Assembly (NCBI GenBank): GCA_964234715.1
Contig: OZ174279.1
Direction: 5' to 3' (one strand)
Source of the DNA: Podarcis melisellensis
Taxonomy: Eukaryota
Length of the DNA stretch: 64,000 bases
Both the position numbers and the translations under genes were made by a program. This document shows positions 1,609 to 43,800 of this stretch, piece after piece. Under the pieces are notes generated by a model, which worked only from the letters and a program-made list of their open reading frames with translations, was not told where the DNA came from and made no database searches. The first letter of the stretch is position 1. Every line of letters starts with the position of its first letter.

Positions 1609-2689
1609 ATGGTAAGGAATTATTACTAGAGATGGAATCCAAGGGGATGAACTGTGGAATTAAATAAACTTGAGAATGAGGGAATGGTGAAAAGAATGAT
1701 TACATTTTGATAGATGATCTTATTTTGGGAATAATAATATTAAAAGGCAGCCTGATATTTGGTAACGGAGGCAGAAAATGCAAATGGAAGCCCTATGGTA
1801 ATGTAATTAATACTTGACAACTTGGTAGCTTAAAATCCACTGTGTGAGGAAGACCCACAATTTCATGCATAATGGCAAAGACAACCCTAATAATAATGTT
1901 AATCTGATTTGGTGATCCCAACCCAAATAGCGTGGCAGCAAAGTACAGACTAGGTAAGAGTTTTTGCACGTTCAAGAGACTCCCCATATTTGCAGGAGAG
2001 TGTCACAGTGTTTACAAAAAGCAGACCTCCTGAAGGCAGCATATGCACAAAGCCCACAGAACAGTTGTGTGCATTCACAGAAATAAAGACTTGCCTTTTG
2101 GCTCTTGTGTTTCCTAGCCACTAACAACAGATCCTCTCCAGTGCTATTATTTATGATTTTAAAATAAAAACTGATAACCCCCTTGATCATAAAATATCCG
2201 AGGGGTGAACAAAAGTACATTGAGAATAAAGACCCAGAAGATACATGCCCAGTACAACTTATGGATTTACACTCTTTTGAGATATTAAAATCTAGCTAGG
2301 GTTGGGCAGTTTGTAATAATATTTAGTGTGTGGGTTAAGAACATTATTATGCTATTATTATAATGTCCATCCAGCGTGGTGTACAAGCTTTTTTATTCAA
2401 TAATAATATATTAATGTATAATGGAAGAAAATCCTTAATTACCGTATATTCAGTACAATGCTAGCTACAGATAAAACTAATAACCATTCATTTCACAAAG
2501 TGAATAGTAAAAAGAAATAAAGTTTTGTGTTTAGTGTTTTATTGAAAATAGTCATTGGAAAGCTTTATTACTGTGTTTATTAGAGGGTTTTTTAATGCAT
2601 TGGTTTTAACTGCATAAAATTATTTTAATAAATATAAATGAATAAAAGAGCTGGAAATGCAGAAAAACAAAGTTGCTGAGGAACCATCT

Positions 2690-3590
2690 TGCGCTCGGGG
2701 AGAGACAGAAACAGTCTGGTGAGTTGGGGAAGTATCCAATTCTCCATCTGTCCGGACCTCCCGCCCTCCTCCCTTAAGCATCCAAGAGTCTCCAAAGCTC
2801 CCGAGTCTGCAAGGGGCTGCGCTCAAGAGTTTCCCGCGGGCTCCGGCCTTTGGGAGCCGGGGATGGCCTTGGGGGGCGCAGGGGTTGCGCGCAGATGTCC
2901 TGGCTTGCTCCCGGGCCGGGGAGGGGGCTCGGGCAGCTGGGAGGGGCCAGAGCACCGACCGAGAGAAAGCGGCCGGCAGGCGGGCCGGGGAACGGAAGGG
3001 AGGGCAGGGCGGGGACTGGAAAGGAGGTGAGGCTGTTCTCCTGGGTCCAGCCCCCTCGCTCCACGCCGAGAGAAATCCGCTATGGGCACCGGCGCCCGAC
3101 GGAGCGCCCTCGCTGTAGCCTTTGCTCTCCTTCTCCCGCAGAGGCGGCGCCCCCCAGTGTCCGCGAGGGGGCAGCGGCAGGTGAGGCTAATCTCCCCCCC
3201 TTCCCCAGGCGCGCGTGGGTTGGGCGGCTTTCTGAATCGATCTCTCGCTCTCTCCGGCCTGAGCGCGACCAAGCGTGGGATCTGTCGGAGCGCGCGCGAG
3301 AGAGAGAAGTTGAGACTTTCCTAACTCCCTCCCGGGCGGCGGACAGTGGCGATTGGCGGGTCGCGGGGAGGGCGAGTCTGTGCCTCCCTCCCAGCCGGAG
3401 CTGAGCTCCGTGGCGCCGGTGGCAGTGCCGCTTACTTCCTCCTCCTCCGTGCCGCCTCGTTGGGGCGCCGCAGGTGAGGAGTCTTTTCGGTGAGAAGGAC
3501 TTTCCGGGAGGAAGTGTGCGAGTTGGGCTGCTTGGAGGGTGGCACGGATGGGACGGCCAGTGTGTTTCATCCTTCTGGCAGCGCCTCTTA
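2690..3590 (+). promoter_or_regulatory. CpG island / promoter and first exon(s) of the prominin gene
   Basis: Abrupt GC- and CpG-rich block after AT-rich DNA; GC box (gggcgggg ~3006); candidate donors ag|gtgagg at 3026, 3180 and 3473. Confidence 0.75.
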
Positions 3591-4947
3591 GTTCTGGCTG
3601 GTGTTTCCTGAGTAGGGGGGCTGTTGTCTGGGATGTTAGTTCTTGGAGTGGTAGGGGCTAGAGTTTGGCGCTAAAGAGGCGCTGTTTCTGCCATGTGCTT
3701 CTTAAGGACCTGAGAAATGCTCCTGCCCCGAGTCAGGCCAGAGGCTCATCTTGTCTGGCCACTTGTTTCTGCACCCCCCCCCCTGATGATCCTGGGCCCC
3801 CTTAAAGCTTCCACATCAGCTTTGAATCTGGAAGGGAACCCGAGGGACATCCACTCCAACCCCCTGCCATGCAGGAATCTCAGATAAAGCTTCTGTCCTG
3901 CTTTCCTCCCTCTCCATCCAAGAAATATTCAAAAGGACAGTATTTCCAGCCTTTAGCTAGAATAGTTATCTAGCTTCTAGGGTCATGTGCAGTCCTCTAA
4001 AAACGCAAACGTGCTGTTGAAAAGATTATTTTTCTCCAGCGAACTCTGTAGTTCAGGAAGGCAGAAAATAAGCACATAAAGTTGTCCCCTCCCCGCTGAA
4101 TTCTATGCTGGAAAATGCGTCACCTGTTGAATTTTGGTTTGTCAGGCAGCGATTAAATACATAGAGATCCGGTGGTGATGATAACAAATAACTTGCCACA
4201 TCCCATCTCAGAAGAGGTTTGCTAACCAAACAATTCATTTGGGTGATACAGCTCTGTAGCCCAATGTTATTCAAACCATTTTGAGGGGGATCATAAGGGT
4301 AAGGTGCAAAAATGGCTTTGTTGTGCTTTAATTCTAAAGCAGACTCCCCCAGCCTGGTGCCCTTCAGATGTTTTGGGCTGCAATTCCTATCGGTTCCAGC
4401 CAGCACAGAGGCTAATGGGAATTGTAGTCCAAAGCGTATGAAGGGCCCCAACTTGGGACAAGCTGTTAGAAAATAATGAACTCCTCAACATGACTGCAAT
4501 ACTGGGCCCTGCTGCATCATGGTCAGTGTTTGAACTCCTGAAGTCTTCCTTTCCTTGCAGTCGTTTGCATTTTCTTGCTGTGCTCTTGCCCATATACTGT
4601 TGGCTATGACTGAGGTTGGCAGAGGGGAAGGTGGTAGTATTCAGATAACAGGTAGCGCATAGGCCTCCTAACCTTCTGTGCCAGCCCCCTAAGCTACTGT
4701 TTGAAGGTTATGGGGTGGCATGATTTGGCTAAAATTGGGTGAGGAAGGAGTTAAGGGCATGAGCTTGTGGATTGCATTAAGGGCCTCCTATTTTCACCTC
4801 TGTGTCCTCTGTCCTAACTCTAGAACATCCCTGTTGACTACATTATCCACCCACATTCCAACTTGGACAAGGAAGTTGGTGCTATTTCATGTCTAACCCC
4901 CCCCCCACTGCAGTCTTTTCCTGGTTGACTTCTGAGCTGCACCAACT

Positions 4948-5172
4948 CACTAACACCTTTGCTTTATTGCAGGCAGGCAGTTGAGTTCCCTGGTCTTGTG
5001 GGGCAAAATTCTCAAATCCTTTCCATCCAAGGCAAGGGTGAAAAGAAACCATTGCAGAGGCCAGCTGTCCTTCTAGGGCAGGGATTCTGTGAAGGAAATG
5101 ATCTGAAGCTCCTCAGGATCTTTCTGAGCTTGCCCAGGAACTTTGAAAGGGCCCTGCATTTCTACTACCAAG
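4948..5172 (+). other. Branch point, acceptor and probable 5' UTR part of the first prominin coding exon
   Basis: Consensus branch point cactaac (4948-4954), pyrimidine tract and gcag acceptor at 4972 with tandem gcag alternatives. Confidence 0.6.
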
Positions 5173-5302
5173 ATGGCTCTGCAAAACTTCACACAGCCTC
5201 AATATCACCCACAGCCCACTGGCCCAAGTGGTGGCCTGCTGGGCTTGTACAGTATGGTGCACTCCTTCCTAGGGATGGTACAACCCAACACCTTCCCAGC
5301 AG
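5173..5302 (+). CDS. PROM3: Prominin coding exon 1 ([15 protein letters not shown]...[15 protein letters not shown])
   Basis: ATG in strong Kozak context (aagATGg); donor AG|gtaagt at 5302/5303; N-terminal prominin motif. Start codon choice is less certain than the 3' boundary. Confidence 0.85.
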
Positions 5303-11300: not shown

Positions 11301-14300
11301 AAACGCACATACCTTTCTGTATGCAAAGCTAGCTCTTAATCCCACCTTCCCTTTCTTCTCTTTTTTCACCCTTTGATATCTTCACTTCCCTGCCTCTCTC
11401 TCAGGGGCCTTTCATCATCTATCTGATACTTTCATGGGGGTGCATACTTTGCTCCCCTAATGTTTCCCCTAAGGAAGAAACCAAAAGCGTTCCTATCCCT
11501 TGAGGTCATCCTTATGGGCACTGGTCCATCACTGGTAGCCTGCAGCCTGCCTGGTTAGTAGAGTTCAGTTTGCTTGCCTCTTTGCAGCAACAGCTCATGC
11601 ACTCAAATGCTGAACGATTAGTATAAAATGTTAAACTTACAAGGCCATTCTATCTAATGAAGAGAAAAGCTTCCTGACCCTCTCTGGTATGAGGTCTGCA
11701 CACACTGGTTTGTATTGGACATGTGGCAGAGACTCTTTCTCCATCCCCTCTCCTGTCTCCATTCCACTCCATACTGTCATCAGAGATTCCAGTTTCCAGT
11801 CAGTCCGCTTGTCCTCAGCCAGACCTGAGCCTTGGCATACTTCTTGCTATATTGAGATAAATATTCAGCATAAAATGGACTCTGACTTGCTTTTTGATGT
11901 TTCTGTGCTTTCCGGTGCTTTTTAACATCTTGTTCTTCTTGAAAACTCCTTGCAACTTTAGAATGAAAGCACCAGAACTAGTCGCTGTGTTTCAGTTGCA
12001 CAGGAAAGTGCTGCTGTTAATCTCCCCCCCACCGCACCCACAACATTGGTTAATGCAGGAACTTCCCGTTCAGTAATGCTTCCCTGCAGACTAATATTTA
12101 GATCATATCCTGGTGTCATAGCCCCATAGTCTTTCACCTCCAGACTTCGAGGTTCAACACTGCTAATTTGTGTTTATGTAATTCTGTGGATCACATCTCA
12201 ATTTACTGCCAGTGCATTTTTCTTTTTCCTGGGTTTTAAATCTGATTGTGTATAATGATGAGTCTTACCTGCTAGGTGGTGATCACCCAACTTCCCTCCT
12301 TGCACAACAAAGAGAGGCATTCAACAAAGTTTTACTCAGGGTAGACCCGTTGAAGTGAATGAACCTGATTTAGTCACATTTGTTCATTTCAGTAGGTAAA
12401 ATTCAGTTGAATACCACCCAAAGTCACTACAGGTGGTTTAGACCACAGCACCACCCACGTCCCTTCAAGCCTGATAGTTTTACCTAAAACCTGGAGAAAC
12501 TGATATTCTCAGTCCCATATGTTTACAGGCTAGAACCAGCTGCTCAGTAGTAGGAGAAGAATACATAGGTGGGCCATTGGCCTGGTTTAGCGAGGCTCAT
12601 CTTAGGTGCTTATGTTTTTACCTGCTAGATCAGAGTGGGCAGAAGGCAGATCTAGCTTTACTGGTAGATCTTTGAGTGATTTGCAGTAGATCAGCAAGGG
12701 TTTCTGACTGCCAATTGTTTTGTGGTAGCGAAACAATCCCTTTTCTCCAAATTATGGTATATTGTGGAAATGAAACAAGCTTGGGATAGCTTGGTGTGAA
12801 TTTTTGTGTGGAAGGATCATAGGCTCAGAATTATTTAATGCTAAGCACATGTATTTTGCATTAGGCTCTGGGTGATGGATCTCAGGGTTCCAGTTAAAAT
12901 CAAGTAAACTTCACAAGCCTGAAGGTCTGGTCTGTTTTCTGCAGTTCCCAGGACACAGCATTTTCTCTTCAGAGCTGTTGAAGCTCAGAGGACATGTTTG
13001 CTAAGCATACAGTATGGCACCCCTTAGTGGTAAAGTGGGGTATTGCTTAACTTGGGCTGCAAAGGGGGGGAAAGTTTCTTTTCTATCAGCATAATGTTTA
13101 TTGAGCACTATAGCCCGTGGCACAAAATAAAAAGAGAGAAAGAAATTCCATATGTGATGTGCATAGAGTCATTCAAACGGGTTATAGCAGGAGAGCTTTA
13201 GAGAAGGACAGCTGGAGAAAATAGGGTCTCATCCTGGTAACATAGGCTACGGGTAGGAATTTCCAAAGAGATCTCAGTGTTTAGTGATGCACAAATGTCC
13301 AATAATGTAGGTGATGGTATATTCCCTCTTCCCCCTCCCCGCCACTGCTGACCCCTCTGTTCTTCTCCTCAGATCTTCTGACTCGCCTGATCCAGCGCCA
13401 GGTTAATTTCACAGATCCAGCAGCGTATAAAGAGGTGATTTATTTATTTATTTTGTATTGGGTCATGGAACTCAGAGGCTAGTGGGTGGCAGTTGGTGAA
13501 CCTGGACAGGGATGAAAAGGAAATGTTGGTGTGGTAGGCTCAGCAAACACCAAAAGGTTGACACTTCACCCAGAAGTCTAATGTGGTTAGATTCTGATAG
13601 GGACTCAGGGATGCATGATGGCCCCTCTTTCAGGAGAATGAAATTAAGATCAGCTGGGGCGTTGGAAGGAGAGTGCTAGGGAAGAAGTCCAGAAAAAACC
13701 CTGGTTTGGAGGATCAGACTAGGCCAAGCTTGCCTAGACAGTGCCATGCCTTCCCAGTACACTTTTGGTGCTAGCATGCGCTGTTTACATTATCCTGGGA
13801 GGCTAAGGAGGAAAGACCTTCTGAGGTCTGAGCTTCCACAGCCACATTGTTCATAGGGATTACTGGACCTGTGATTATGTGTGACTCTGGGTGGGAACTT
13901 TTGAAGCCCGTGTGCAAGACCTCAATGCCCTGTGCAAGCACACATATACCCTGATGACTAACAAGAGCAGCCTGATCCTTGCCAGGAATGCAGAAGCAGG
14001 GGTAGAAGCCTGCAAGCCCTGTACATGCGACTAGGTCACTACCTCTAGATGAGCAAAGTGGACTCCAGAATAAGAAACTTCATGTCCAGTACATGGCCAA
14101 GAAAACATTCTAATAAATCCAGATTGTTTTTGAAGAAGAACCATCAGTGGACACCTGGGGACCACCCTGTGCTGAGCCCTTCACCCTTTTATTTTGGGGC
14201 AGGCAGGTGTCATCGTCTTTGAATGATCATACTAGCTGACTACTGTGTCTGTTTGTTTTCTTCTTTCCTCCCCTCCCCATCTCTAGATGTTTGTATACCA

Positions 14301-17300
14301 AGCAGGTTTCCTCGTTTGCCTTGTCATTGGTCTTCTTTTCATCATCCTTGTGCCCCTAGTGGGTTTGTTCTTCTGCTGCTGCCGCTGCTGTGGGCACTGC
14401 GGTGGCTCCATGTACCAGAAGCAGGTGAAAAACACCAATTGCAAGAGGCGGACATTATTTGCATTCCTGCTAGCTGTCTCTACCGTTCTCGTGTGAGTTG
14501 AGTACTATACTGAGCACCAACAAACAGGGCGGGAGTGGGTTATTGCTGTGACTAGTTCAGCAAGGAGTTTATTCCAATCTGTCTACATTGCCCATTCAGC
14601 AGTAGTGGACAGCATGGTGAGGCTATGCTGCTCACCTGACTTCCCTCTGGCTGAGTCAGTGCAGCATACTGCGACAGAGTGGCTGAGGGATGAGGTTAAA
14701 GGTAAAGGGACCCCTGGCCAACTCTGGGGTTGCGGCGCTCATCTTGCTTTATTGGCCGAGGGAGCTGGCGTACAGCTTCCGAGTCATGACTAAGCCGCTT
14801 CTGGCGAACCAGAGCAGCGCACAGAAACACTGTTTACCTTCCCGCCGGAGCGCTACCTATTTATCTACTTGCACTTTGATATGCTTTCGAACTGCTAGGT
14901 TGGCAGGAGCTGGGACCGAGCAACGAGAGCTCACCCCGTCGTGGGGATTCGAACCGCCGACCTTCTGATCAGCAAGTCCTAGGCTCTGTGGTTTAACCCA
15001 CAGCGCCACCCGCACCCCTTGAGGGATGAGGTTGGTGCAGTGCAAATGCACCAGTGGAGCCAATCTAGTGCTTCTGCCAGCATGCTTGCAACATGCTGAC
15101 CTTACCTCCCACCCTCCATCCTGGTAACTCAGCTGGACAGGAGGTCAGGTGATGGAGCAGCCCCCAACTATACAGCTACTGCCATTCGGACCCAATTTCA
15201 AGCAAGATGCACCTGCTTAGCTGTCTGATATGCATTGGCTTGTCTCACTTGCATGTACAGTTTGTAGGCCAGGTGGGCACTTCTCTTATGTGCTGATGTC
15301 GTACACATAGTGGCTGCAGGTCTAGTTTAAATGAGACAATTTATTTGTCTACTTGGCATCACTTTTAAGTCTGCCCACAGCCTTTTATGATGGTCTTGTG
15401 CAAAGGAATGGCTTCCTGGAGCTGAGGGAGGATGGGATGGTCCCTGCAGGGAAGCCCAACAGGAAATTGCACTGTGCGTGTAAGCTACTTCTATTGTGTG
15501 AAATGAAAAGTTGAGGTTAGTAGCTCTGGCAACAGAGATGGAGTTTCCAAACCTTTGGGGAGCTGGGAGATCAGCCACTAGAGACGTTTAGCAGTGCAGT
15601 ATGATAAAAGTAGGCCTTAATTCTTGCCAGTTCTCAAGCAAGTATATCTCCTCACTGAACAACTACAGAGTTACATTGGAGTTCAGGGGAAATGATGAAT
15701 GACACTATTTCCAGTCAGACTTGACCTCCAGCATCACTGTTCCTATCAATTCAGCACATGGTTCAAGTCTGAGCAGCCGGTCACCAATTTTCTGCCAGAA
15801 CAACTTGAGGCACATGAGCATAAATGTGTGAAGGGAGACGCCCAGGAGCCTTCTGTGGCATGGCTGGCTGCTTAGGAACCAGAGCATGGCTGGCTTTTAC
15901 TCTGGAGCATGCCATCACAGGCACAAGCAACTGCCAGAGCCCTTTCTGCACCATTTGTCCTTGCACTAGTTCTACGGAGGTTCTTGCAGACCCGAGGGAA
16001 CCCAGGGCGCCTATGAAGTGCTGAATTATTTCAGTATCATAAAGTTGGAATGGATCTAAAAGTGACCTGGATTAACCTCTGACCAGGGGCAAGGGGAGTG
16101 CATCCACCAGGCACCCCCAAAATAAACCTATACATTCAAGATTACAATGTGTTGCAAGCACAGAGTGGGTACTACAGAGTAAATAGTTGGAGACGAATCA
16201 CACAGACATGCAAGTCACATGCTGCAGTTTTACTGCTGCCTTTGGGAGGTACTAGTAGGTCTCCATGACCTGCTCACATTGCCTATGCTGTATCCCCCAT
16301 TTGCTCCCCCCCAAAATGGCACAATGTCAATCAAGACACTTCATAGATAAGTCACAACTTTGTTGGTACCCATTGTTATGCTTTTTGACTGGTTGCATGA
16401 TATTACTAGCTTTTCCTCTTTGAGGAGAAGCAACTTCAGTATGAAGAGTTGTCCTCTCAACTCTGCCTGCTTCCTTCACTGCAGGGCTGGAGATATTTGT
16501 GCGTATGTCAGCAACCGTCAGATATCACAAGGAATCAGTGGAGGCTTTGTCACTTTGAACAATACGATGGACAACCTGTTCATGTTCCTGAACTCTATCC
16601 CTAAGGTATATAGTCTATAAGCTGTATTGTGCACCTTCCCCTGCTTCCTTTCTGCAGGCAGGTGTCTTTTGTATTGTCCTCCTATCCTCCATGCATGATC
16701 GCTTCTCCTGCCCTGCCTACATAGTCAGGTGTTCTTCTTCCTCTTGCTCTGCTTGTTTCCTACACCAGCCTCCAAATGCCTTGCCCTGTTTCCCAGAAAT
16801 GCACCTCTGTATCCCTACCTCCAACCTCCAATGATCTACTTCTTATGAGCATCATTGCACTGTTTAGCGGCCATTATCCCACTGACATGCCCTAAATCTG
16901 CACTTTCAACACTTCAGTGGCCATGGCAAACTATTTAGCCACTATCAGTTAGCAAGGGAAACTGGATCAGATGATACCTGAGGAAGAATCCTGTGCCAGG
17001 AATAGAGGTCAATGGCTTTTCAAGCACAGGTACAGGGCTACAGGGGTCATCTTGGTAGTTTTGGACTTCAGTGCCTTCTCAGGCACCGGTTTTCCATATC
17101 TGCTTTGATTAGGATATAAAAATATAGCAGCACAAACTGTTCATAGTACTGGAAGGCACAAACATGCTTTGCTGTTAACACAGAATTATCAAAATGGTGC
17201 TGATCTACATTGTTTACCAAGGTATATTGGTTTAATGGTACAGTGGTGCCTCGCAAGACGAAATTAATCCGTTCCGTGAGGCTCTTTGTATAGCGGTTTT

Positions 17301-20300
17301 TTCGTCTTGTGAAGCAAGCCCATTGACAGCTTAGCGGATTAGTGCTATTAGCGGTTTAGCAGCTTTTAGCGATCAGCTGTTAAGCGGCTTATCAGCGGAT
17401 CAGCTGATAAGCGGCTTAGCGGCTTAGGAAAAGGGGGGGAAAGGGAAAAAAACCTGCAGGAACTCGCAAGACATTTTCGTCTTGCGAAGCAAGCCCATAA
17501 AGAAATTCGTTTTGTGAAGCGCCTCCAAAACGGAAAACCCTTTCGTCTAGCGGGTTTTCTGTCTTGCAAGGCGTTCGTCTTGCGGGGCACCACTGTACCT
17601 CCCACTGAAGGCAGCTCCCACAAGAAACACAGGGACCAATATATCATGCCATGCTAACTTCTTAGAGCTCTTTCTGAATAGTGAATTAAATTGTTCTTTG
17701 GGAAACCATTTGCAAAACCTCCATGTGCCTGAAATATCTTTTTAACCCATGCTTAACCATGGGGATTGGCAGGAGCTGGTCTGGATAGAAACACCCACCA
17801 TACCTGGAGGCAAAATAACTGCAGTTGTGTTCCCAGTCCACAAAATGTTGGGTTGGTTGTGGCTTCAGTGTCTCTTCACCTGCAGATTAGATGGTAGTCA
17901 ATTTTGTATGTTCAGCTCCTCAATTTTTTTGCAAATAGTATTTGCCTCTATGGTGGAAGACACTCGTGACCACTTACTTTTAAGCTGTGATCCATCATGA
18001 AGTTCCACATATATTTTTGCAGGACAAACGTAAGTGTGTTTATGTCAAAATTGGTGCTCAAAGGGGACTGATTTCCCAGTAAGAGTACACAGGATGGTAG
18101 TCTTTAGGGCTTATTTTGTAGACTTTCTACACAATATTTATTTATTTAGGCTATTTATATAATGCTATTTCATAGAAAACAGACATCAATTAAATCAAAC
18201 ATCAATTAAGTATTGTGGAAAGATGTATTCTAAATGGCAGTGATTCAGGAGTTCAAAGAAACCTTTTCAACTGGATTGGTGTAAAACTGGGGAGTGAGAC
18301 AATGCGGAAGCAATGCACTTCAGTACAATGGACACTTTTGAGTCCTCTGTGTTCAAGCAATGCACATCATGCTGTTGTCCTTATAATTTCATATACCTGA
18401 CCATAAATATGTTCAGGATCTTGATCCTGCTTGCTGCCCCCTCCCCTGCAGAGCATACTGTATTTCATCACTTTCCTGGTTCTTCACAGGAGATTAATGA
18501 CATCATTGACTCCAGTTCGGTGCCACTGAAGCAAGCCAATCAGAGCCTGCAAGGTCAGTTTCTGCCACTGGCCACAATCTGTGTTGTCTAAATCTTGAGG
18601 GAGGGAGGCAAAAAAAGCAGGCCTCAAGCTTGTAAATCAACTGAAATTACCCAGTCTCATTGGTGGAGGTGTAGTCAAGGAGCAAGCCAGGAGTCAGGGT
18701 CAAAGAGCAGGCCACAACTGGAGGAGAAACCAAGAGTTTGGGAGTCAGAAATGGAGGACAAACTAGCTGGCATGAACAAAGAAGAATGAAGGATTCAGGG
18801 AACACACCAGTGCTCAGGAAGACTTTGTTGCTCAAGCAAGGCTCAGCTGAAATGGGTAGCCTTTTATATTTCTTCCTGCTCAGGAAGATCCAGTGTCCAG
18901 CCATGGTGGGTAGAGTCAGACCAGTACTGGAAGGGTCTTCACCAAGAAGATGTTCACCTGAAGCTCAGTGCTCTACCACACAAGACAGCTGCATACAGAC
19001 CCAGCATTTCCTGAGAATTAGAAGTCTGCCCCAAAGTTCAGTGGTCATCTGCAGAATTCCTTCCTATACCCTTGTGGCCTGCTTCAGCCACGCAGTCATC
19101 ACTGAGTTCTGATCCTACTGTAGAACGTTGGTTTATACCCAAAGCATTGCCCATTATCCCTTTATCATTCAAGGAGATCTCAATGTCCATAAACCATTTT
19201 TTCTGACATTTGGTATGTGACATAATAGTGGGAAGCATTCTTGTTGATCCTCTTGTTCTGATGTTTTCTCTGCAGAGATTGGGCAGACTTTGGGAGACAA
19301 GATCAAGAATCAAATAGGTGGACGAGTAAACGAAGCACTGGGTGATGCTGAACATCTTCTCAATGGTACTGACCTACTGTGTAATGAAGAGTGTGTTGTG
19401 GGATCTAGTAGTAGAGATGGAGGCCCAGAAAGTGTGTCTCTTTAACTGTGGCACAGGGCGAGGCAAAGGTGCTCAGAGGACAAAGAAGGTTTAGAGCATG
19501 GGTCAGGAATTTTTGGCCCTCCAGATGTTGTTGGGACTCCAACTCCCATCAGCCACAGCCAGCATGGCTAATGATCAGGGCTGATGGGAACTGCAGTCCA
19601 GCAACTTCTGGAGGGTCAAAGGATAGCCAGCCCCTGCTTGGGAGAAAAGTGCTTGTTGCTGTAGTTCATTATCCTGAATTTGATTTGTTTGTTTAAAGCA
19701 TTGTTTTGTTTTGTTTATGTATTTACCCCTCGTTATGTGACTGCTTTAATATGTGGAACTGGCAATATTATAGGTCCTGTATAGTATTTGTTCTGCATTT
19801 GTAAGAAATGGATCTTGTAGTGTGGCAGCCCCCACACTTCAGAACTCCTTGCCTATTGACATCAGGCAGGCACCTACATTGTGCTCTTTTTGGCACCTGC
19901 TTAAAACATTTTTGTTTAGGTAAGCCTATCCAGATATGTTGAATGTTGACAGGGGTTTTACTCTGGTTTTTAGCTTTTTGTGTGTGTGTGTGTGTGCGCG
20001 CATATATATACATACACACACACACACACACACACACATACATACTGATAATTTCAGTGTTTTATATCTTTGTTAACTTTCTTTTTACATTCAAGTGCCA
20101 TATAAATTTTACAAAAGAAATGAATTGCATTTGATTTATTCATTGAGGTCCAGCTCTGAGGGCCTTCTGGTGGTTCCCTCCCTGTAAAGTTACAGGGAAC
20201 CAGGCAGAAAGGGCCTTCTCGGTAGTGGCGCTTGCCCTGTGCAATGCCATCCTGTCAGATGTAAAAGAGATAAATAATTATTTGACCTTCCATAGACATC

Positions 20301-23300
20301 TGAAGGCAGCCCAGGAAGCTTTCAGTGTGTGGTGTTCTGTTGTGTTCTTATTTATTCTGTTGGAAGCCACCCAGAGTGGCTGGGGCAACGAACTCAGATG
20401 GGTGGGGTACACAAATTTATTTAGTTTTATTTTATTTCATAAAACATATGCACCACTTGATTCCCTTGTGCTAAAAACTATCTGTCACCGGGGTGGAGAT
20501 TGCAAAGTTCCTCCTCACTCTTTTTCTCTGCCCATTGCAGTGATTAGCCTTGTGGAAAAAGAGCTCCGGGCAGTCAATGAGTCAACAAATCACTTGCGGG
20601 ACCTTCAGGAACAGCTGAACCAAAACCTGACCGTCTTGAGAACTGATATCAACCAGACTTTGAAAGAGTGTGGTGCACCTTGCAAGGATGTGCGAGTGCC
20701 GAACCTGGAGCCTGGGGCCAATCTCAGTGCGGTAAAATGGGGTTGGAGCACAGAGAACTTTGGGAAAGGGATGGTGGGTTTTTAGAGAACATGGGAAGAA
20801 GACCACTTTCAGGATAAGTGGGCTTAGCTAATTGAGTGATACTACTGAGACAAAGGCTAAAGCCAGTGTCAGGTGGTGCAATAGATGTCAGGGTGGAATC
20901 TCAGCTGAGGGCTGGCTACAGTGTTGGAGCGTGTCTACAAGATGCCCATGGATGTGTTTGTCTGGTCTTGTGAGCATGTAAACATACAAATGTCTTAGTG
21001 GACGCCACGTTGCTCTTACCTGTGTCAGTGTAAACATTTGAGTGAAACACAAAGATTCCTACCCCTCCCAGAACACAATGCATCATCACTTTAATTTCTT
21101 ATACATAGATAAATTGTCCCTTTATCTGTTCCCACAGGTTCCAGATGTCAGCCGCCCACTCCAGCTGTTGACCAATCTGACAGACTCAAACCCTCAGGAC
21201 ACCATTGCAAAGGTAACATCCTTCCCTCCATCCATCTTTTCTCTCTCCTCCGCTATCAGAGTGTGCCACACAGAGCAGGCTTTCTGAGTGCCCATGCCAG
21301 GTGTCAGTGTGCCAGGGACGGCCTGTCTAGGAGAGGCTGTGCAGTAGGAGCAGAGCCACAGACTGAGCCTAGCAGCATAAATCATAGCCTTGGGCCACAG
21401 GGCTCAAACCATCAATGCCTGTATCCCATTCTCAGAAGGTATTGTTAGCCCACTTCCTCTTTGGAATCAGCACGTATTGCAATGCCTTTTTGATTCACAT
21501 TGCTTTGCCCTTTGTTCAACACTATAAGAGCATATGTGATTCTGAGATCTCTGTGTTGTTTGTCTTTTGTTTCCATTTGCATATGTCTTTATTCTGGGTT
21601 CTGGCACTGGCAGGCAAGGCAAGTTCTGGCTGATATTCCAAAGAAGGTGTCTGAACAAACAAAAAAGGTGGTGTCTGGTAAGTGGTTTCAGCAGATAAAT
21701 AAAGTTGTGTGTATTCTCATTTCAAGAACCAGTTGAAAGGCTGTGGTTACACTTATAATGTTCTCAGAAACTAGAGGTCAGCTGCCAAATATCTGTTTGA
21801 TCAGTTCACATTAATATGTGGAATTTATTCAAGTCTTAGCTCTCAGTCATTCAATATAACGGTTTACAGTTATGCAATAGTGCGGCCTTTTCTTTGTTTA
21901 GAAATTGTTATTCTACAAATATACTTTCTACATAGTAACTGGAGTTCACACCCAACAGTCTCTCACATGTGCATGTTTAAGCAACATGGCATTTCCTGTC
22001 CTGAAGCTGCAATTACAGCTACCTAGGTGTGGATGCATGGAGTGACAGGTGTGTGTTAATCATATGTGAACATATGAAGCTCTTGTTCTACAGTCAAATC
22101 AATGGTCTGTCCAGCCCAGCACTGTCGACTCTGATTCACGGTAGTTCTACAAATTCCACTTGAGATCCCTTAATTGGAGATGCTGAGGAATTCAGTCTAG
22201 GACCTTGGTCATGCATTCACTCTTATCACTGAGCTACAAGATGTCCCAAAACATTTAAAAAACATATGTCCTCCTATGGACCAATGCCACATACACACTG
22301 TTGTTTAGAGGACATGGCTAGTCTGCACATTCTTGCTAGCTCCTCCATTTATTAGGCATCAGTGGGGCTCATTCAGGGCTGTCTTAAGCATATGTGGCAC
22401 TCGGGTACAAAGATCTGCCTGGCGCCCCCCCCCAGTTGCCCAGTCCCAGGGGCTCAGGAGGACAGAGCCGGCCACCCACCTCAGCATCTTACTGGCTTGG
22501 TCACCCCCGAACTCGTGGTGCAGAGCCACCTGCAGCAGAAGAGCCTACCGCGGTGCTCCGACCGATGGACGGGCTCTTCCCCGGACTCAGCTCTCGGATC
22601 CCGGACTCTCAGCCTGGTGCCCCTGAGAGCCCGGCACCCATGTGCCCCGCACCCCTAGTGCCTATGGGTAAGACAGCCTTGGGCTTAGTGGAGCTGGATG
22701 TTTCCCTTCTCCCAATCCACAGCTTTCCTTGTCCTTCCTGCTTTGTCTTCCATAACTTGAACTGAATGAAGGATGGGCAGCCAGAAATGAAGGAGGCATG
22801 AGATTTGCTGAGGTGTGTGAATGGTTCTTCCTTGGAGAGCTAATAGGCAATTGGGCATAAAATGCTACATATCCAGAACACATAGCAAGTGGCTGCCCTG
22901 TGGTAAGATGCTCTCTGCCATAGTGAACAAAGTATATTTGTTTATCTGTGTATCTTTTGGTCCTTGCAGAAGGAGAGGCTCGCCTCCGTGATGTCGAGCA
23001 AGCGATTGAAGATAGCCGTAGCAACTTTTCCACACTGAGCAGAATGGAGAATATCTCTCAGTCCATGAAAGATGTTGTCAGTTGGGCAAATACCTATGAG
23101 CTGGATATTGTCACCTATGATAGCTACAGGTATGAATTAAAGTGTTCTTAGAGTATTGTAAGCTCGGGAAATCCCTTAGGTTAGCTTAAGCCACGGTAGG
23201 TCCTGTGTTGGGTGAAATGTTGATCCCCTGTCCCTCCTGACTATGAGTGGTCATATGTTATCAAAATGGCAGCTGTAGGAAATGGGATTAGAATGGCAGC

Positions 23301-26300
23301 CTAAACGAAGGGCTAAAAGCTTTCTGGCCACTATTTTGGAAGCCTCTGATGTGCAGTTTCATGTCACACGGATGGTTTCCCACAGCATTTTTGGACAGGG
23401 CACCACATCTAATCTGCAGTAGTATGAAAATTAAAATCCTTGTCTTCCAATTTGGTTAATTGGCCCAGCTAGCACTTGTTTTTCTTCAGTGCTATACCAC
23501 TGTTCATAACCTAGGCTTGGATGGGATCTCATGTTTTCTAATTTGCTTCTTCTTGTTGCCAGGGCTTTGATGCACATGCCAGCAGAGTACAGTCTTGTTG
23601 ATGCTGGTTTTTAGCAGAGATCAAACCCATTACCAGGTTTTGACTCCTTCCTTCCTTTAGCCATTGTCTTCTGTTGGAGTCTTAACTGTTTTCCTTTTCC
23701 TTACTTTAGGTGGATTGCTGGCCTTTGCCTCTGCTCTCTGGTGCTCGTGATCATTGTATTCAACGTGCTGGGCCTGTTGTTTGGGGCACTTGGGCTAAAC
23801 CCGCGAGAGATGCCTACCAAACGGGGCTGCCTCGCAAACACTGGGGGAGACCTCCTCATGGCGTAAGAGACTTTGCACCTTCTCCCATCTCATGACAGAG
23901 AGTCATCCAATAAGTCAAAGGAATGTAGGAAGCTGCTGCTGCATCCCATGTCAGGCCCTTGGTTCATCTAGCACAGCACCATCAATGCTGACTGGCAGTG
24001 GCTTTCCAGAGCTTCAGCTAGAAGTCCTTCCAAGCCCTACTTGGAGATGCCAGGGATTCATCCTGGAACCTTCTGCATGCAAAACTCATGTTCTGTTACC
24101 TTATTACCCTTCCTGATGATTGCTAAATGTTGCCAAGCTGCGTTATGGCGTAGCAAATGTGAGAGCATGGGTGGCAGGACTCAGGAGGCAGCTGTAGATC
24201 TTTATATGTATTGCTGGTTGCCTGATTCCCCAGCTCTCTGGGAGCTATTCTATGGAGGGTTTCCCCATACACAATCTGTTTTGTGTACAGGCTCCTACTA
24301 GAGAAAGCTAGGGTGGGAATGTCCTTAAGTATCCAGAAATGCAGCGTTACTGGCAGATTGGCACAGTGCAGAGCCATGCCCCCTGAGTATTTTGGCACCC
24401 TGACCTTGTCCTGGACTTTCCCATGGACCTCTGGCTGTTCCTTATGTTTATCTGCTGGATTGTGTGTCAGAATGAATGGAAGGGTTGCCTGGGGCAAATG
24501 TGCAAGGGCTCCGACAGCTGCTCTTCAGCGAAATCCCAGACCTCCAATCATGTTTTCCCTTCTCTGACAGGAGCGTTGGGTTCAGCTTCATATTTTCATG
24601 GCTGCTGATGCTGCTGGTTCTACTGACATTTTTAGTTGGGGGAAGTATGTACACAGTGGTGTGTCGGCCATGGGCCGATGGGCGTCTCCTTCAGGTAAGT
24701 CCCTTGGGCTACCATGAGTATTCTTTGATACTGCTGAGTGCCGTCTGCAGTGGAACAAGGGGGGAAATAATGTGGGCGAGGAGAGAAGTGAGTCACGGTT
24801 TCCCTTAACACCAGACTAGAACCCACACACTGTAACCTTAGATTCTTATCCTGGGATCCCATCTCTCCCCCTTGTCAATCATTATCATTTTGGCATGGAA
24901 ATTGCTGAAGTAGGCATGAGACAGCCAGGCAATCCCACAATCTGCAGAGGAGGAAATCGCAGGGAGAGGGAAATACTGAAGATGTTGTTTTGAGTTGAGA
25001 GGCTAAGAATCTAATGAATGACTATTTTCTTCTAGTTTCTGGACACACCAGGGCTGTTCCCTGAATTCAACCTGACACAGCTCTTGCATTTGAAGAGTTC
25101 TGATGTGAACCTCTCCAGCCTGTACAAGTGAGTGGCTGCCTGGCTAGATTCCTCCATGGCTTCCTGCCTACTGTGACTTTGGTCCTCAGCTTCCCCCAAA
25201 GGGAGAGAGACTCTTGAGAGTAGGGTGGGAACTGCAGGCTGATAGAGTCAGGCATGCAGTGTATGGGAGTAGGGAAAAGTAAGTTCCACCCACTTGCCAA
25301 CATGCAATGTCAGGATACCATGCGCAGCCATGCCAGGGGGCCCTGGTGCAGAGAAGTTTTAATTTATTTATTTTTAGTTTTTTTCAGATTTTGAAATTTG
25401 CAAACAATTATCAAACAACCAACATAGAGAATTCTTTTCCCTTACATTTCCAGCATGTATTTGACCTTGTTTTATACAAGCTAGTTTACTAGGGGTTAAA
25501 TACCAATGATACATCAATTTCATATAATTTTCTTTCAACGTATAACATGTCCAAAGTCCTTGCCCAGCATAGACAGGAAGTTTCATAATACAGTCGTACC
25601 TTGGAAGTCAAACGGAATCCGTTCCAGAAGTCGGTTTGACTTCCAAAACATTCGGAAACCAAAGTGTGGCTTGAAGCCATGGAAGCCCCGTCGGACGTTT
25701 GGGTTCCAAAGAACGTTCGCAAACTGGAATACTTGCTTCCGGGTTTCCAGCATTTGGGAGCCAAAACATCCAAGTACCAAGGTGTTCAGGATCCAATTTG
25801 TCTGTATAATCTTAAATGTAGTGCGGAGAAGTCTTTCCCTGACCCACAACTTCTCCATTCTGCCAAGAGTTTGCTAGAATAACAGCCTGAATCATGCTTT
25901 TCTTTCTCTGAGGTACCTTTCAGCCTGATCACTGTGCTTCTTAGTCCTGCTATTTCCCCTCAGTTCTTGCCCCCATACTGAGCTTATGTCACCAGCAACC
26001 CCATTGCCCCCTGGAATAAGAGTTAAACTACATGATTGGAAAGCTTGATTGCATGGTGATGCTGTTTCCCCAGTTTATGTTTGACATAGCATAGTGTATG
26101 CTGGTCTCTTAGCTCGGTTTTCACTCTTGCAGGAACTGTGAAAACAATGCCCCCTTGTGGAGCACCCTTCACCTGGGTGAGGTCATCCCTCTGGATGAGA
26201 TCCTAAACACCAGCAAGGTCAGTGATGAGTGTCTGTAGGTGAATTGAGACAGCCACAAGAGAAATTAAATGACCAGCAAGATTAGTGTCCTCAGATATGC

Positions 26301-29300
26301 TCTGGGATAGTTAAAAGTCCAGTTCTGGGGCATATCTTCCACCATCTGGAGAACCCCAGAGAAGTGTCCTGGGAGACTGGATTGTTATGTACTCTGCACC
26401 TACTCGCCTTGTTTTTCTTTTGCTCTTACAGTACACCGATAATATTGATGCAGCCTTAAAAAAAATAAATATCAGTTTGGGCTCCACTGACCTCCTGAAG
26501 GATGAGCAGAAGCGTCGCCTGCAGGAACTGGGCTCAAAGGATGGGCTGAACCTGAATTTTTCCAGTGCTCTGAAACAAGTGAGATGAGAGGGTGGAACAG
26601 CTTCTCACAAGATGATTTCTTTTATTGATCTTTAAGGGGTTTGACATTGTCTGGTATCTTGTGAGATATGTCACATCTGAAAAAGAGTCTTTTTTAAAAA
26701 AATAAAAAAGTTAGGCCATTCAAAGTAGCTTAGATTACCTAACAGGACTAGTGACTTGCCTAGAAAATGATATCATTGCCAGTAATAGTAGTGTAGGCTC
26801 CATCCCCACAGAAAAATGAATGCCCTTCATGCTTGCTGGGGTATGAATTGCTGCAGGAAGGAATCCATCAGCTGGGATATTCTGATTAACTGACAATGGA
26901 AGGGTCGTTGGGTTGATGATGTCAGCATAGGTTACTGGCAGCTGCTCAGTCTGTTCAGGAGAAAGGATAGTGTCCGGAAAGGAGTTCCTTTTGGGTGCAG
27001 CCCAAAAGGAAAGCCGTCCCCCAACAAAACTTGTGCAGGTTACTGAGTTTAAGAAAATCTCAAAGACATCTGTATAATGAAATCATGCCATTCCACATAA
27101 ATAAAAGCAGCAGTTAACACGTAAACAGGACAGGATTTGCCTGGTGCCTAAAAGCAAGGACGAAGATGCCAGGCAGATCACCCTTGGGAGGGAGAGCCAT
27201 AATTAGAGCACAGTCACTAAAAAGGTACGCTCTTTGGATGGCACCCACATGTCCTTTTGTAGGTGAGGGCACCCAGAAAAGAGCCTCTGATTGTTGTCTC
27301 ACAGATCATTGGAGGTGGAGGGATGAGGTGAGCTTTCTCTTCCCAGAGGTGTGATGTGAAATAATAATAGCTTACGTATCAATGGGTTCAAAATGAAATA
27401 AAACAAGTTGGAAAGCAGATTCTAGGAAGTGTGCGAACTTAATCTGCCTGGGCCCTGACCTTACTCCCTCCAATGTCTCTTGCTATCCTCGAGGAGCTGA
27501 CCCACAGTGTGCTCTCTGTCCCTTTCTTTGCAGATCAACGAGACTGTGACAAAACAAGACCTGTCTTCATTGGCAGCGAATCTAGATAAATTGGCAGAAA
27601 ACACAGTGAGTGGTGCTTTGATTGGGAAATCCCCATTCTTCTGCAGTGCTTCTCTCCCCCAGCTCCCTTTCTAGGGGGAGGGGCCCTGTAGGTGTCTTTT
27701 TGGGATCACTTCAACCCAGAGCTGGTCCAATACATTTTGGCACCTGAGGCGGACCACAAAATGGCACCCTCCCCGCCAGAGAAGTAGGGGCGAATGAAGA
27801 TCTACATTGGGAACAAGGGGGAGAATTGAATTAATCTTATCCAACAGCTGAAGTGGAAATGAAATGCTGTCATGGCGGGGGGAAAGGGGCCTGTTCTGAA
27901 TCATGCCCCCACCATTTCCTCTCTAAGGGTGATAGGAGACCAGCAGCATCTCCTAATTGCCAAGAGGTCACTGTAGAGGTGGCATGGGGGGCAGGGAACT
28001 GTTGAGGAGAGGCAGATCCAGCCCCCAAGCAGTGTGCCACAGCCGTCAGTGCCACTGCAGCAGCAGCCATGGGCTGAATCAGCTGTCCCTGTGGATCCTG
28101 CTGCCTGAGGTAGTCACCTCATCTTGACTAATAGGTAGGCTGGCCCTGATTTAACCCCAGATCCTCCCTGAAGATGGGAAATAATTGCATCCCACATTGT
28201 CTCCTGGAAATGTGCCCACTTGTATGTGTGAAAGCAGCAGAAAACCTATCAATATCTCTTCACAATGGTGGTGCTTATGAACGTATTTTCAGGCAATTAA
28301 TGAGAAAGCTCGGAGCGATTTTCAACTGGAGGCCAGAAGGCTGAGGAAGCTCCAGGAATGGGTCAATGACATGTTTCCTCCTCAGATGGTGAGTGCTGCT
28401 CTCCCCAAACACCTTTACCTCCTTTTGGCCCAGACCAGGTGCCGTCTTGAACAAGGCCTCTCTGGACGGTTTTGATTCTTGGCCCTACCAGGCCATAAGA
28501 TGGTTGATATCTGTCCCACCTTCTGTCAACTCATTCCATCCAGCTCAGTGGGTGGTGCCCTCTGATGAGCTTTCTCTGTCCTCAGCACATCCTGAGAAGC
28601 AGCATTCAAAAACTGCAGAAGTCTGTTCCTCAGATTCCGGTAAGCAGGACAAGGTTCGAGGAAGGAGTGATCTGGGAGGTGGGGCTTTGATGCCAGGCTT
28701 TCTGAAGGACACCCCATTAGATATTGGATGGGTGGGGAAGTACAATCTCTGCTGATTGTCTGCTGACAATCTCGCCAGGCCTCCTTGCATAACAATGTGA
28801 GAACTCAAGGTAACAGGTGCCAATTGGGAGATACAGAGATTTCCCTTGGCATTGACTCTGTAGGGGTGGAGTTTCAGAACCTGGAAGACTGTGGGAGATT
28901 GACAGAGTTGGTAGGCATCCCAAAGATGGACAGAGGATGTGTTAATGGGGCACTGGCAGAACTATACTTGTGTGCGTTCGGGGTCTGTATGGTGCTGGGT
29001 ATGAAATGCTAAGCTGCAGTCCTTCATATGTTGGACTCGCAGTTCCCATCAGTCCCAACCAGCATGGACAATGGTCAGGATTGATGAGAGTGGTAGTCCA
29101 GCAGCATCTGAAGAGCTGCAGTTGTGCAACTCCTGCTAAAGCATACCAATAAACCTGTCTCAGCCTTATGATAATATACCAGCGCTGCTCCCTTATGCCC
29201 ATTGGATTATGTGATGTTCTGCTCAGTGGTCTGTTCAGATCTGTATGGAAAGTGGTGGTGAGGGCAGCCTATGAGACTGTCTCTGCCAGGGAGTGAACCT

Positions 29301-32300
29301 GACAGTACTGTGTCCTGCCAGGGTACAGCGAACGCCACGTTGTCAAAAATAGAAGATGCTCAGATATTTATGAAGTGGCAGGCGCAGGACGTTGTCAAAA
29401 ACGTGAGTCTTCTTCTCATCATTCAACCTATTTCCTGGTGGGGGTACACAGAGGGCATCATTAAGACTGGATTTGTGCATCGCCACATAATGTAACATGG
29501 AGGCTCATTCCCAGAAGTCCTATAGGCCTCTAACTATGATATTAGACATGCTAGTGAACAACTCTGGGAAATGGGAATACAGGAAATGCAGTGGAGAGGA
29601 GGACAAGCGAAAGCTAGTGCTCCCAAGATAGGGACATGTGACACCCCAGCTGATTTTACCTTTTCCTGTACCCCATACGACAGCCCAATTTCCCTTCCTA
29701 TTCTTGGAACCATTAATTGGAGCCCCATAACTGAACCCCTTTCCTTGCTTGGAAGCTGTTGTCCTATCCTCTAACTTGCACCCACCCATCTTACCTTCTT
29801 ACATCTAGGAGACTTCAGCTTTCGTGAAAACTCTGCTGGGTTTATTTGAATCATATATAGACTGGGCAAAGAGTACCGTAAGTAATGCCAACTGCTGTTG
29901 ATGGAGATTGGGCTTAATCCTGAGTGATGACAAGGTGGGAGCCTGGTTGTCCTTGCTTGTATACTTATGTTATACTCGCATCCAGGCTGGATGCTTGCCT
30001 GTGGCTATGCATGAATTTACTGGACCTTTTAGCCATAGTTTATTTATTATTTACTGGTTTAAAAGATTTATAAACTGCTTAATCAAAGCACTCTCTAGAG
30101 ACGGTGCACATAACAAAGTTATAGTTAAAATGTAGATGAAATCTGCAAAGCAATAAAAAACAAGTATATATAAAACATACCACATTTTTCCATCTATAAG
30201 ATGCCCCCATGCATAAGATGCCCCCTATTTTTGAGGACTCAGATTTAAGAAAATGGGGGGGGGTATAAGACGACCCCTAATTTTTGACATTAATTTTAAG
30301 GAAAAAACCCGAGTCTTATACATGGAAAAATATGGTAATTAAAACATTGATTAAATCAGTAAAACTTTAAGAACAAATATGAGTAACTAAATTATATGTC
30401 TGGGTAAGTTTGCAATAGACGTCAAAAATGATATGGGGCAGGGAACCTTTTCTGCCTGGTGGGCCAGAATTTTATTTCCAAATCTTTGACAGGTTACTTT
30501 TGGCAGGTGGATGGAGTTTTGACACCAGCTGATACTGCAGTTTGAAACCTCAGTTGTCCCCATGCCCTGCTGTCTGAACTTCTGAAAACTGTCAGGAGCA
30601 CTTTTGCAAAGGGCCTTCAAATAGCCACACACTCCTTTTTTAATGTCCAGTTTTTGCAGGTTCAAACAGCAACACCTGGTCCTCCATTTTGGGAAGATGT
30701 CCATGGGAATCATGAAACAGGAAGGAGGAATCCTGCTGAACTTATGGCAGCAGATGAGTGAGGGTTAATTTCTCCTGGCTTGGCTGCACTCGCCTGTTTC
30801 CCTCAAGTGTGAGCAGCCAATGTAACACTGAATCCCATCATCCTGCCCATCAGCAGCCAGTGCAAATATCTGAGGGCAACTCCAATATGCTGACAGAACC
30901 TCACTCCTGGCAGCAGTCCTGCTGCAGCATTCTGTACTTAACAGCAGTTTCCCGATCAGCCACTTGCATTCACATGCCAGTCTTACAGCCTCATGCACAG
31001 GTGGCCCTGGAGGCATATGTAAGCAAAATCAAGTTGATCTCCCGGAAAGTGTACTGCCATTGCCCATCTTACTTCTAGGGTGCAAGCACAGCATGAAGTT
31101 ATAAGGTTGGCAATGCCAGGACAATTCCTACCATGTGCTTAGCTGGACTGGCAGCATTTATGATGACAACACAATGAAGGTGTTTGGCCAGGAAAGGAGT
31201 GCAGGGCTCAGGATTTTTCCTTTGCTGGTCATGATGTTTCCTTGTCTTCTTTGCTGGCAGATCAAAGAGCAGGTGGGCCGCTGTGGCCCTGCAGCCTGGG
31301 CACTGGACAGTGTGAATACCGTGGTCTGCAGCTGCGTTGTCAATTCATTGGTGAGGCAGTCAACATGAGGGATGAGCTGGGGTGTGGCAATGAGGCAGCA
31401 TGGATAAGGGACAGCAGGGTGGCAGTCCGTAGGTTGAGAGATGGAGACTGCAGCCCAGGATGTAGGAGTAACTGGTAGGTGGTGGGGCCACAGAAATTGT
31501 AACTACCTTGGGCAGAGGCTGTGCTGTGGCTCTGGGAATCTTGCCTGGGGTGGGGCATGGAAAGAAGCTGGGGAGACATCTGCACGTGGGACAGATCCCT
31601 GTGCTCTTGAACGGGCATAAGGCTGGGGAAAGTGTATAGATGTATGTGAAGGGAGCTCTAGTGAAACGTTGGGGAAATGGATGGAAAAGACCCAGGTAGG
31701 CTGTAGGCGAGGCTTACCTTGCATGAGCTCAAACAGGGTGGGAGTTAAGTGGAGAGAGACAGCGGGAGGACTGACAGCTGCCTTCCCCTCTTCTCCCCCT
31801 AGAACGCCTTCTGGTTCAGTCTAGGCTGGTGCACCGTCTTTCTGCTGCCGAGCATCATCTTGGCTGTGCGGCTTGCCAAGTTTTACCGCAGAATGCACAT
31901 GGATGACGTCTACACGTGAGGATGGGTCATACTTTTGCCTGTCACCCTGCCTATGGCCATGGATCAGATGCTTTACTTCTCCCACCCCCCACTCCCAGTA
32001 CTGTTCACTGATTATAGGCTTGGACACCCCTTAAGCCCTCTACCTTTCAGTTGGTTCCATTGCCTAGAAGTGCAAGTCCAGGTGTAGGGCTGCTCCTGTG
32101 GTATTCTTGTAAACCAACCATCCCTCTTGTGAAAGTGTCTGCTTTTAAGATACTGATGGAAAAGTGGGTTCTCCAGGGGAAGCCTCTAGGGGAAAGTGCT
32201 AACTGCCTTCCCTAGTAAGTGAAAAAGGGAATGTTTTGACTTCCCACTTGCTTATACTCAGAAACAGCTTTCAACCTTTCTGGCAAAACAGGGTCCTGTG

Positions 32301-43027: not shown

Positions 43028-43800
43028 CTCGGGGCGTCCGCCGCGGCTGCCGACCACATGGGGAAGGAGCTCAGCGGGACGCGCCGCGGCGGGGCAAAGC
43101 TGGCGGCGCCTCCCCAATGCGCCCTGCCTCTTCCAGCCGGGAGCCTCGCTCCGCCCGGTCTCCCCGCCGACTCTGGCGCCACTATATCCCCCCTCGACGC
43201 CCTTCTTGCTCTCGCCGGGCACTTCCACGTCCTCGAGGAGGGCCCCGCTGCCTGCCTCTGGCGCCTCCCGAGTCGCCTTAACTCTAGTCCGCCAGCTCCT
43301 GCGCGCCCTGCTCCTCCGCAGCGGTCAGGTCCTGGCACTCCCGGGCTCCGTCCCTCGTCCCGCTGCCCCGCTTCTTCCCTTTTTCTCCCTTCCTCGCGCG
43401 CTCTCGGGAGTTGACAGCAGCTCTCCCTTAGGCGCCCCGGGGTCCGCCCCGAGGAGGCCGAGCGCAGGCAGGTCGACCCGGGCGTTTCTCTAGCGAAGCT
43501 CTGGGCGCGCGGGCAGCGAGAACCTCGGCGCCTCTCCCCGTCCAGGTCCGAAAGCAACAGCGCCCCGCACAATTACTGCAATCACGAGGCTTCTCGTTTC
43601 CGGGCGCAGTCGCTTCCGCGGCCGGGCCTCGGCGGCAGAGCCCGAGCTGCCTCCGGCTCTCTTACTTCCGTCCCTGCCCGATGAGGTTAAAAATCTCACC
43701 GCCCCGACTGAGCTGCGGCTCCTGAGTGCAGCAGCAGGCAGGGGAGAGCAGGAGCCCCGCCGGGCCTGCTTTACAGCTCCGCCCTGCGTTAAAGAGACAC
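42780..43800 (-). promoter_or_regulatory. CpG island / promoter of HPS6
   Basis: CpG-dense block over the HPS6 5' end; ETS-type cttccg motifs at ~43613 and ~43665. Confidence 0.75.

Follow-up and report, generated by a model that had tools for sequence, protein, structure and literature searches.

The prominin-3 gene of the lizard Podarcis melisellensis is translated from an ATG at position 5173, and its product starts without a signal peptide. Taking the start codon, the missing leader, membrane insertion and history together, it is highly probable that lacertid prominin-3 begins at this ATG, carries no cleavable signal peptide, uses its first transmembrane segment (TM1) as an N-exo signal anchor, and owes this arrangement to one loss of the leader on the tetrapod stem. 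The window, the whole stretch of DNA that we analysed, is 64,000 nucleotides long, and all positions refer to it. A first-pass annotation, made from the letters alone, had described a prominin with a leaderless first coding exon and had missed its identity as prominin-3; the missing leader is a trait of the whole tetrapod clade, not a peculiarity of this genome.

Results

The exon that encodes TM1 (14287–14493), used as query against a representative protein library, returned 337 prominin matches at E ≤ 0.001. The best full-length matches, from gecko, newt, platypus and chicken, are 784–804 residues long and place TM1 at about residue 65–70 rather than 100–110; NCBI labels these orthologues "prominin-1-A(-like)". 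A word search with the gecko protein led to the Podarcis muralis protein P0195 (805 aa) and to snake proteins named "Prominin-3" in UniProt. The P. muralis locus and the window DNA are 93–96% identical, and P0195 served as the stand-in for the window protein in the Pfam, topology and hydropathy analyses. By tblastn, P0195 found all 24 coding exons at 75–100% identity, with no stops inside the exon matches, in agreement with the earlier statement that the remaining exons are intact. The coding sequence spans 5173–33609 (Table 1). P0195 matched the Pfam family Prominin (PF05478) over residues 6–771 (714.5 bits, E 2.1e-214), while in the PDB neither exon 1 nor P0195 had a sequence match.

In a 40-protein tree without a mammalian PROM2 sequence, the Podarcis protein grouped with the Crotalus "Prominin-3" (UniProt J3SF22) and with chicken, platypus and amphibian proteins. 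These tetrapod proteins (SH-aLRT 99) are nested in a 28-row clade with fish and coelacanth orthologues, and the PROM1 clade and a "B" clade stand apart from this prominin-3 group (SH-aLRT 99–100). On this phylogeny, the gene is the tetrapod prominin-3 orthologue, a member of the prominin-3 group of Han and Papermaster (2011; PMC3108902). Its neighbour HPS6, intact and in a GC-rich island, lies tail-to-tail with prominin-3, and HPS6 is the downstream neighbour in sturgeon too, which makes it a synteny marker. Elsewhere in the window, at 63044–63386, a GC-rich tandem repeat (109-nt unit, 3.1 copies, 85% matches) carries an inverted repeat in each unit; it is surrounded by a CpG-rich block (62500–63700) with long open frames on both strands.

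Table 1. Coordinates of prominin-3 features and of the neighbouring HPS6 gene in the window.
Feature	Position	Strand	Remarks
Exon-1a ORF, ATG-started, 33 codons, CpG-island exon	3082..3180	+	donor CAG/GTGAGG at 3181
Non-coding 5' exon segment	3254..3473	+	relative's RNA; donor CGCAG/GTGAGG after 3473
Intron, non-coding exon to first coding exon	3474..4972	+	X12 joint
Untranslated leader of first coding exon, 200 nt	4973..5172	+	in-frame stops 5074, 5104, 5125; spanned by RNA contigs of the relative
In-frame Cys codon TGC, six codons 5' of the ATG	5155..5157	+	possible remnant of residue 1 of the mature protein as found in fish
First coding segment, Met1 to first base of codon 44	5173..5302	+	100% identical to P0195 residues 1–43
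Second coding exon	13373..13434	+	ctcag/AT...GAG/gtgatt; second N-tail sequon, NFT
Third coding exon: N-tail end, TM1 and Cys-rich basic flank	14287..14493	+	proposed N-exo signal anchor; 3' boundary approximate
Remaining 21 coding exons: TM2–TM5, two large glycosylated loops, C-terminal tail, stop	16486..33609	+	tblastn with P0001 and P0195
HPS6, single exon	40580..43228	-	PF15702, 4.8e-149; PF20468, 3.9e-177

The first coding exon begins at the acceptor ttgcag/G (4972/4973). Upstream of the ATG at 5173–5175, which stands in the strong context ACCAAGATGG, the prominin frame is closed by TAG 5074, TGA 5104 and TGA 5125, as the first-pass annotation had read it; the sole other ATG in the leader opens a 2-codon micro-ORF (5098–5106, ATG ATC TGA). 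From ATG 5173 the frame stays open to 5302, where GTAAGT follows, and encodes 43 residues plus a (G). This segment holds the sequon N5-F-T (5185–5193) and the motif VQPNTFP. It has no hydrophobic core: within the first 30 residues the Kyte-Doolittle mean of 9-residue stretches peaks at 1.6, and the corresponding median for fish orthologues is 2.64. The claim that a hydrophobic leader is absent is confirmed by hydropathy and alignment, the two measures used to judge it, and the oddity is real rather than an annotation error. DNA contigs of run X20, possibly from the same sample as the assembly, showed 0 differences from the window over 2400–5600, and all sampled sequence words were present in runs under two organism labels.

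RNA evidence came from three studies (X1, X6 and X12) of a close relative whose exon differs by about 3%, in the form of assembled contigs, which drop rare isoforms. In RNA runs of the window's own species the first coding exon was not found. Four runs were aligned to 2400–5600. The 2.8-kb X12 contig is spliced, joining 3254–3469 to 4969–5302 and skipping 1499 nt of GT..AG form with the cut at +4, that is, with the donor after 3473 and the acceptor before 4973; past 5302 it continues into sequence equal to the start of the exon at 13373. Contigs from X1 (4973–5302), X12 (4969–5302) and X6 (4977–5302) cover the exon without interruption, and a 198-nt X1 contig lies on 3284–3465. A search for ATG within the non-coding 5' exon segment found none. 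The first-pass annotation had allowed for a leader exon spliced into AG 5137 or AG 5172; no such joint occurs in the contigs of the three studies, all of which read straight through. Compared with the window, the relative carries indels of +11, +1 and −1 (one run), each frame-breaking by itself, and of −9 (one run) in the leader and substitutions only 3' of ATG 5173, the pattern expected of untranslated sequence followed by coding sequence. In P. muralis a 1-nt deletion opens the leader frame, and there is still no ATG back to a stop in the upstream exon. Hence, ATG 5173 is the translation start, fixed by the upstream stops and by the relative's RNA contigs.

The same arrangement recurs in other tetrapods. 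In a chicken RNA contig for a protein of 798 residues, the 5'UTR contains in-frame stops and the acceptor is only 8 nt away from the ATG, and the cDNA ends of Xenopus prominin-3, obtained by 5'RACE, include an alternatively spliced 5'UTR (PMC3108902).

Several further features of the 5' region deserve mention. The 345 nt of the X12 contig that lie 5' of 3254 match neither the window nor the P. muralis locus, and a search with the 30 nt before 3254 in both lacertid loci (≤6 mismatches) found no match; they could come from an additional 5' exon beyond the stretch or from a strongly diverged CpG island, or the contig could be chimeric. The intron between the non-coding and the first coding exon carries two fragments (~3829–3890 and ~4340–4410) of an interspersed repeat that is very abundant: summed depth over them is extremely high in every run and peaks at ~220,000 in the DNA data. 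Within the leader, a block at ~5030–5072 (GGTGAAAAGAAACCATTGCAGAGGCCAGCTGTCC) aligns well with the gecko leader amid diverged surroundings and may be a UTR regulatory element.

Comparison of orthologue N-termini, which the first-pass annotation had put forward as a way of dating the loss, separated tetrapods from all other vertebrates listed here. Among 110 parsed tetrapod proteins, 105 start at most 46 residues before the VQP motif and lack a hydrophobic core, typically with M-x-L-x-N-x-S/T-x-P-x-Y. Within the first 30 residues, the best 9-residue hydropathy reaches a median of 1.03 in tetrapods, below the 2.64 of fish orthologues. Three bird isoform models (P0236, P0260, P0271) and an Alligator sinensis model (P0022) have N-termini extended by 17–50 residues from upstream in-frame ATGs, and these extensions have no hydrophobic core. 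A classical leader is kept in coelacanth (Latimeria), bichir (Polypterus), sturgeon (Acipenser), paddlefish, gar (Lepisosteus), bowfin (Amia) and teleosts, and in two sharks or rays; in sturgeon the leader and the VQPNPFP motif share one exon. The leaderless tetrapod proteins form one clade (SH-aLRT 99) within the prominin-3 group, and these sequences are most simply explained if the leader was lost once, on the tetrapod stem. No lungfish orthologue was among the matches listed, and the loss is therefore bracketed between the coelacanth on one side and amphibians and amniotes on the other. Outside the prominin-3 group, a bichir "B"-clade paralogue (P0171 / P0094; Polypterus, Erpetoichthys) is modelled to begin, leaderless, with MTQQCPS..., immediately ahead of the conserved Cys. 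The related gar protein has a leader, and the bichir paralogue has either lost its own independently or been given a gene model that is cut short.

In fish and coelacanth the leader is followed by a Cys and, 9–12 residues on, by the same sequon. The in-frame TGC of the lizard leader stands 10 residues from the sequon, and an in-frame Cys codon 4–10 codons 5' of the ATG also occurs in gecko, turtle and the alligator model. The lizard codon may be a remnant of the one for residue 1 of the mature protein as found in fish, a weak indication since a 1-nt deletion destroys it in P. muralis. An alternative open frame across the leader (4929–5303, ...DLKLLRIFLSLPRNF...) was considered as a frameshifted leader relic and rejected, because it has no ATG, its gecko equivalent contains stops, and the two lacertids differ by a 1-nt indel within it.

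A hydropathy scan of P0195 gave exactly five segments (residues 73–91, 121–139, 393–411, 443–461 and 746–767); the sturgeon and coelacanth proteins show these five as well, in addition to the leader. P0195 contains 20 sequons, nine in each of the two large loops, two in the N-tail (N5 and N55) and 0 in the short loops. Five segments, with the loop sequons so confined, would place the N-terminus and the two glycosylated loops on one side of the membrane. TM1, at residues ~70–92, is the most hydrophobic segment of P0195 (19-residue Kyte-Doolittle mean 3.15) and is followed by a basic, Cys-rich flank with 6 K/R within 25 residues, encoded in the same exon. The N-tail ahead of it is ~67 residues long, with a median of 3 K+R versus 7 D+E. 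The mature tails of fish proteins are similar in make-up, which suggests that the N-tail was fit to be translocated without a leader before the leader was lost. Of 105 tetrapod proteins, 91 retain an N-x-S/T sequon at residues 3–10, as do fish proteins, in which this segment is certainly luminal; 13 bird proteins and one turtle protein have lost the N5 sequon, which is hence not indispensable.

These features make TM1 most likely an N-exo (reverse, type III) signal anchor with a luminal N-tail. Among the three alternatives of the first-pass annotation, this was the one in which TM1 acts as a reverse signal-anchor, and the five segments, the 18 loop sequons and the basic cytosolic flank after TM1 favour it. 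The other two fared worse: an altered topology is contradicted by the positions of sequons and charges, and a leader supplied by another exon is opposed by the relative's RNA contigs, the chicken contig, the Xenopus 5'RACE cDNA (PMC3108902) and the frames at both upstream donors.

We infer the following route of insertion. SRP would target the nascent chain once TM1 leaves the ribosome, and TM1 would then insert head-first, probably with the help of the EMC insertase, which inserts N-exo signal anchors lacking signal peptides, proteins whose translocated domains are mostly under ~40 residues (PMC6269167, Chitwood et al. 2018). The acidic, K/R-poor N-tail would be carried into the ER lumen, where N5 and N55 could be glycosylated, and the flank after TM1 would remain cytosolic. 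The charge pattern matches that of the N-exo class, and the tail of ~67 residues is longer than the ≤~40 typical of it (PMC6269167). In evolutionary terms, the ancestral leader would have been lost once on the tetrapod stem, and an internal Met, four residues ahead of the conserved sequon, would have become the new start.

We weighed three other accounts of the missing leader. Under the one that would explain it away, the upstream stops are assembly errors or the gene is a pseudogene that has lost its start. Apart from the unusual start itself nothing speaks for this; the X20 contigs and sampled words reproduce the sequence, none of the 24 coding exons is disrupted, RNA of a close relative shows the gene to be expressed and spliced, and the same start occurs in more than 100 species. 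This account is effectively refuted. A leader hidden in a minor or tissue-specific transcript has more to be said for it and is nevertheless very unlikely. Here the exon-1a ORF (3082–3180) would be spliced to an AAG acceptor at 5172, giving MGTGARRSALAVAFALLLPQRRR...-MALQNFT. The ORF ends exactly at a phase-0 donor, and its ATG, open frame and donor phase are conserved both in P. muralis (L002 ~3909–3998, with an in-frame 9-nt deletion) and in gecko (L003 1304–1399, followed by a gtaagt donor in the same phase). An AG lies directly 5' of the ATG in lacertids and gecko, the lacertid exon-1a peptide has an 11-residue hydrophobic stretch, and rare isoforms are possible beyond what contigs show. 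Against this, the contigs of three studies contain no joint into 5172 or 5137, and none of the relative's RNA contigs uses the donor at 3180/3181. Spliced to the acceptor actually used, 4973, the ORF reads GCA GGC AGT TGA and stops after 3 codons. The gecko peptide (MRSRARRSGPTVASAPPSP...) has no hydrophobic core, and its ORF would extend 44 more codons into exon 2. AAG acceptors are weak, an RRR cluster after the hydrophobic stretch is atypical of a cleaved leader, and the chicken gene, whose acceptor is 8 nt from the ATG, has an upstream exon that contains in-frame stops and no leader. We rejected the exon-1a ORF as a displaced prominin leader on the frame analysis and the non-hydrophobic gecko peptide; from its conservation we read it as an upstream ORF of prominin-3, a real exon feature and not a leader.

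The remaining account accepts the start and disputes the topology: the N-tail would be cytosolic, or residues 21–35 would act as a weak uncleaved signal, and N5 would not be luminal. For a protein translocated without a leader, a tail of 67 residues is indeed long (PMC6269167), some birds do without the N5 sequon, and residues 21–35 are the most hydrophobic part of the N-tail. That segment, however, is mature ectodomain in the leader-bearing fish orthologues. The five segments and the 18 sequons confined to two large loops would fix the N-terminus on the side of those loops, the tail is acidic and the flank after TM1 basic and Cys-rich, and of the non-avian tetrapod proteins examined only one, from a turtle, lacks the sequon. 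An altered or dual topology is accordingly hard to credit, and N-exo insertion through TM1 remains the reading that we prefer.

Discussion

The absence of a leader in tetrapod prominin-3 is largely known. One figure-legend line reports that no signal peptide is predicted for Xenopus laevis prominin-3, in print since 2011 (Han and Papermaster 2011, PMC3108902), and for the family the feature is ordinary. The Xenopus protein belongs to the same orthogroup as the lizard protein, both by the three-way classification of that paper and by our tree of amphibian orthologues, which start at a like position with M-x-x-x-N-x-S/T. The Xenopus paper (PMC3108902) neither models the topology nor dates the loss, and it does not set the frog protein against the leaders of fish. 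The dating itself, with a leader in coelacanth and none in all examined tetrapods, appears not to be spelled out in the papers searched.

Fish and coelacanth prominin-3, labelled "prominin-2" or "prominin-1-A-like" by NCBI, belong to this orthogroup as well, and N-x-S/T-x-P-x-Y and VQPNPFP are common to them. The two checked, sturgeon and coelacanth, share the five membrane segments of the lizard protein. Where the fish genes encode a classical leader and then the Cys, the lizard has an untranslated, stop-rich leader. Prominin-1 (CD133) and prominin-2 resemble the lizard protein in their near full-length match to PF05478, pentaspan layout, Cys-rich flank after TM1 and two large glycosylated loops; they differ in falling into separate clades (in a tree without mammalian PROM2), in having cleavable signal peptides, and in placing TM1 at ~100–110 instead of ~70. 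A Drosophila prominin-like protein likewise has no cleaved N-terminal leader, with an extra transmembrane segment predicted in place of the signal peptide (PMC11776279), whereas the lizard protein retains no N-terminal hydrophobic segment at all.

For the proposed route of insertion, the closest parallel is found in N-exo GPCRs without signal peptides (PMC6269167). They share with lizard prominin-3 a leaderless, unfolded, acidic N-tail with N-terminal sequons and a long, very hydrophobic first transmembrane segment followed by positive charges. The likeness is one of mechanism, not homology; the prominin tail measures ~67 residues against ≤~40, and its dependence on EMC is a prediction. This length gives the missing leader a mild interest of its own.

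A more elaborate history, which we think unlikely as a whole, would date the loss to ~350–400 million years ago, have the ~67-residue tail carried head-first through TM1 ever since, and add a possible minor isoform or dual topology. As part of it, a minor isoform with the exon-1a ORF joined at AG 5172, or partly untranslocated tails, could conceivably regulate the amount of prominin-3 at the surface. If this history were true, prominin-3 would have one of the longest leaderless N-exo tails and would be a stringent EMC client.

The start is real, and annotation pipelines that expect a leader should therefore not "repair" prominin-3 models. Fish and tetrapod prominin-3 form a matched pair, one with a leader and one without, for asking how a long N-terminal ectodomain crosses the ER membrane and whether it needs EMC. 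The relevance of the missing leader would thus be greater for membrane-protein topogenesis than for prominin biology.
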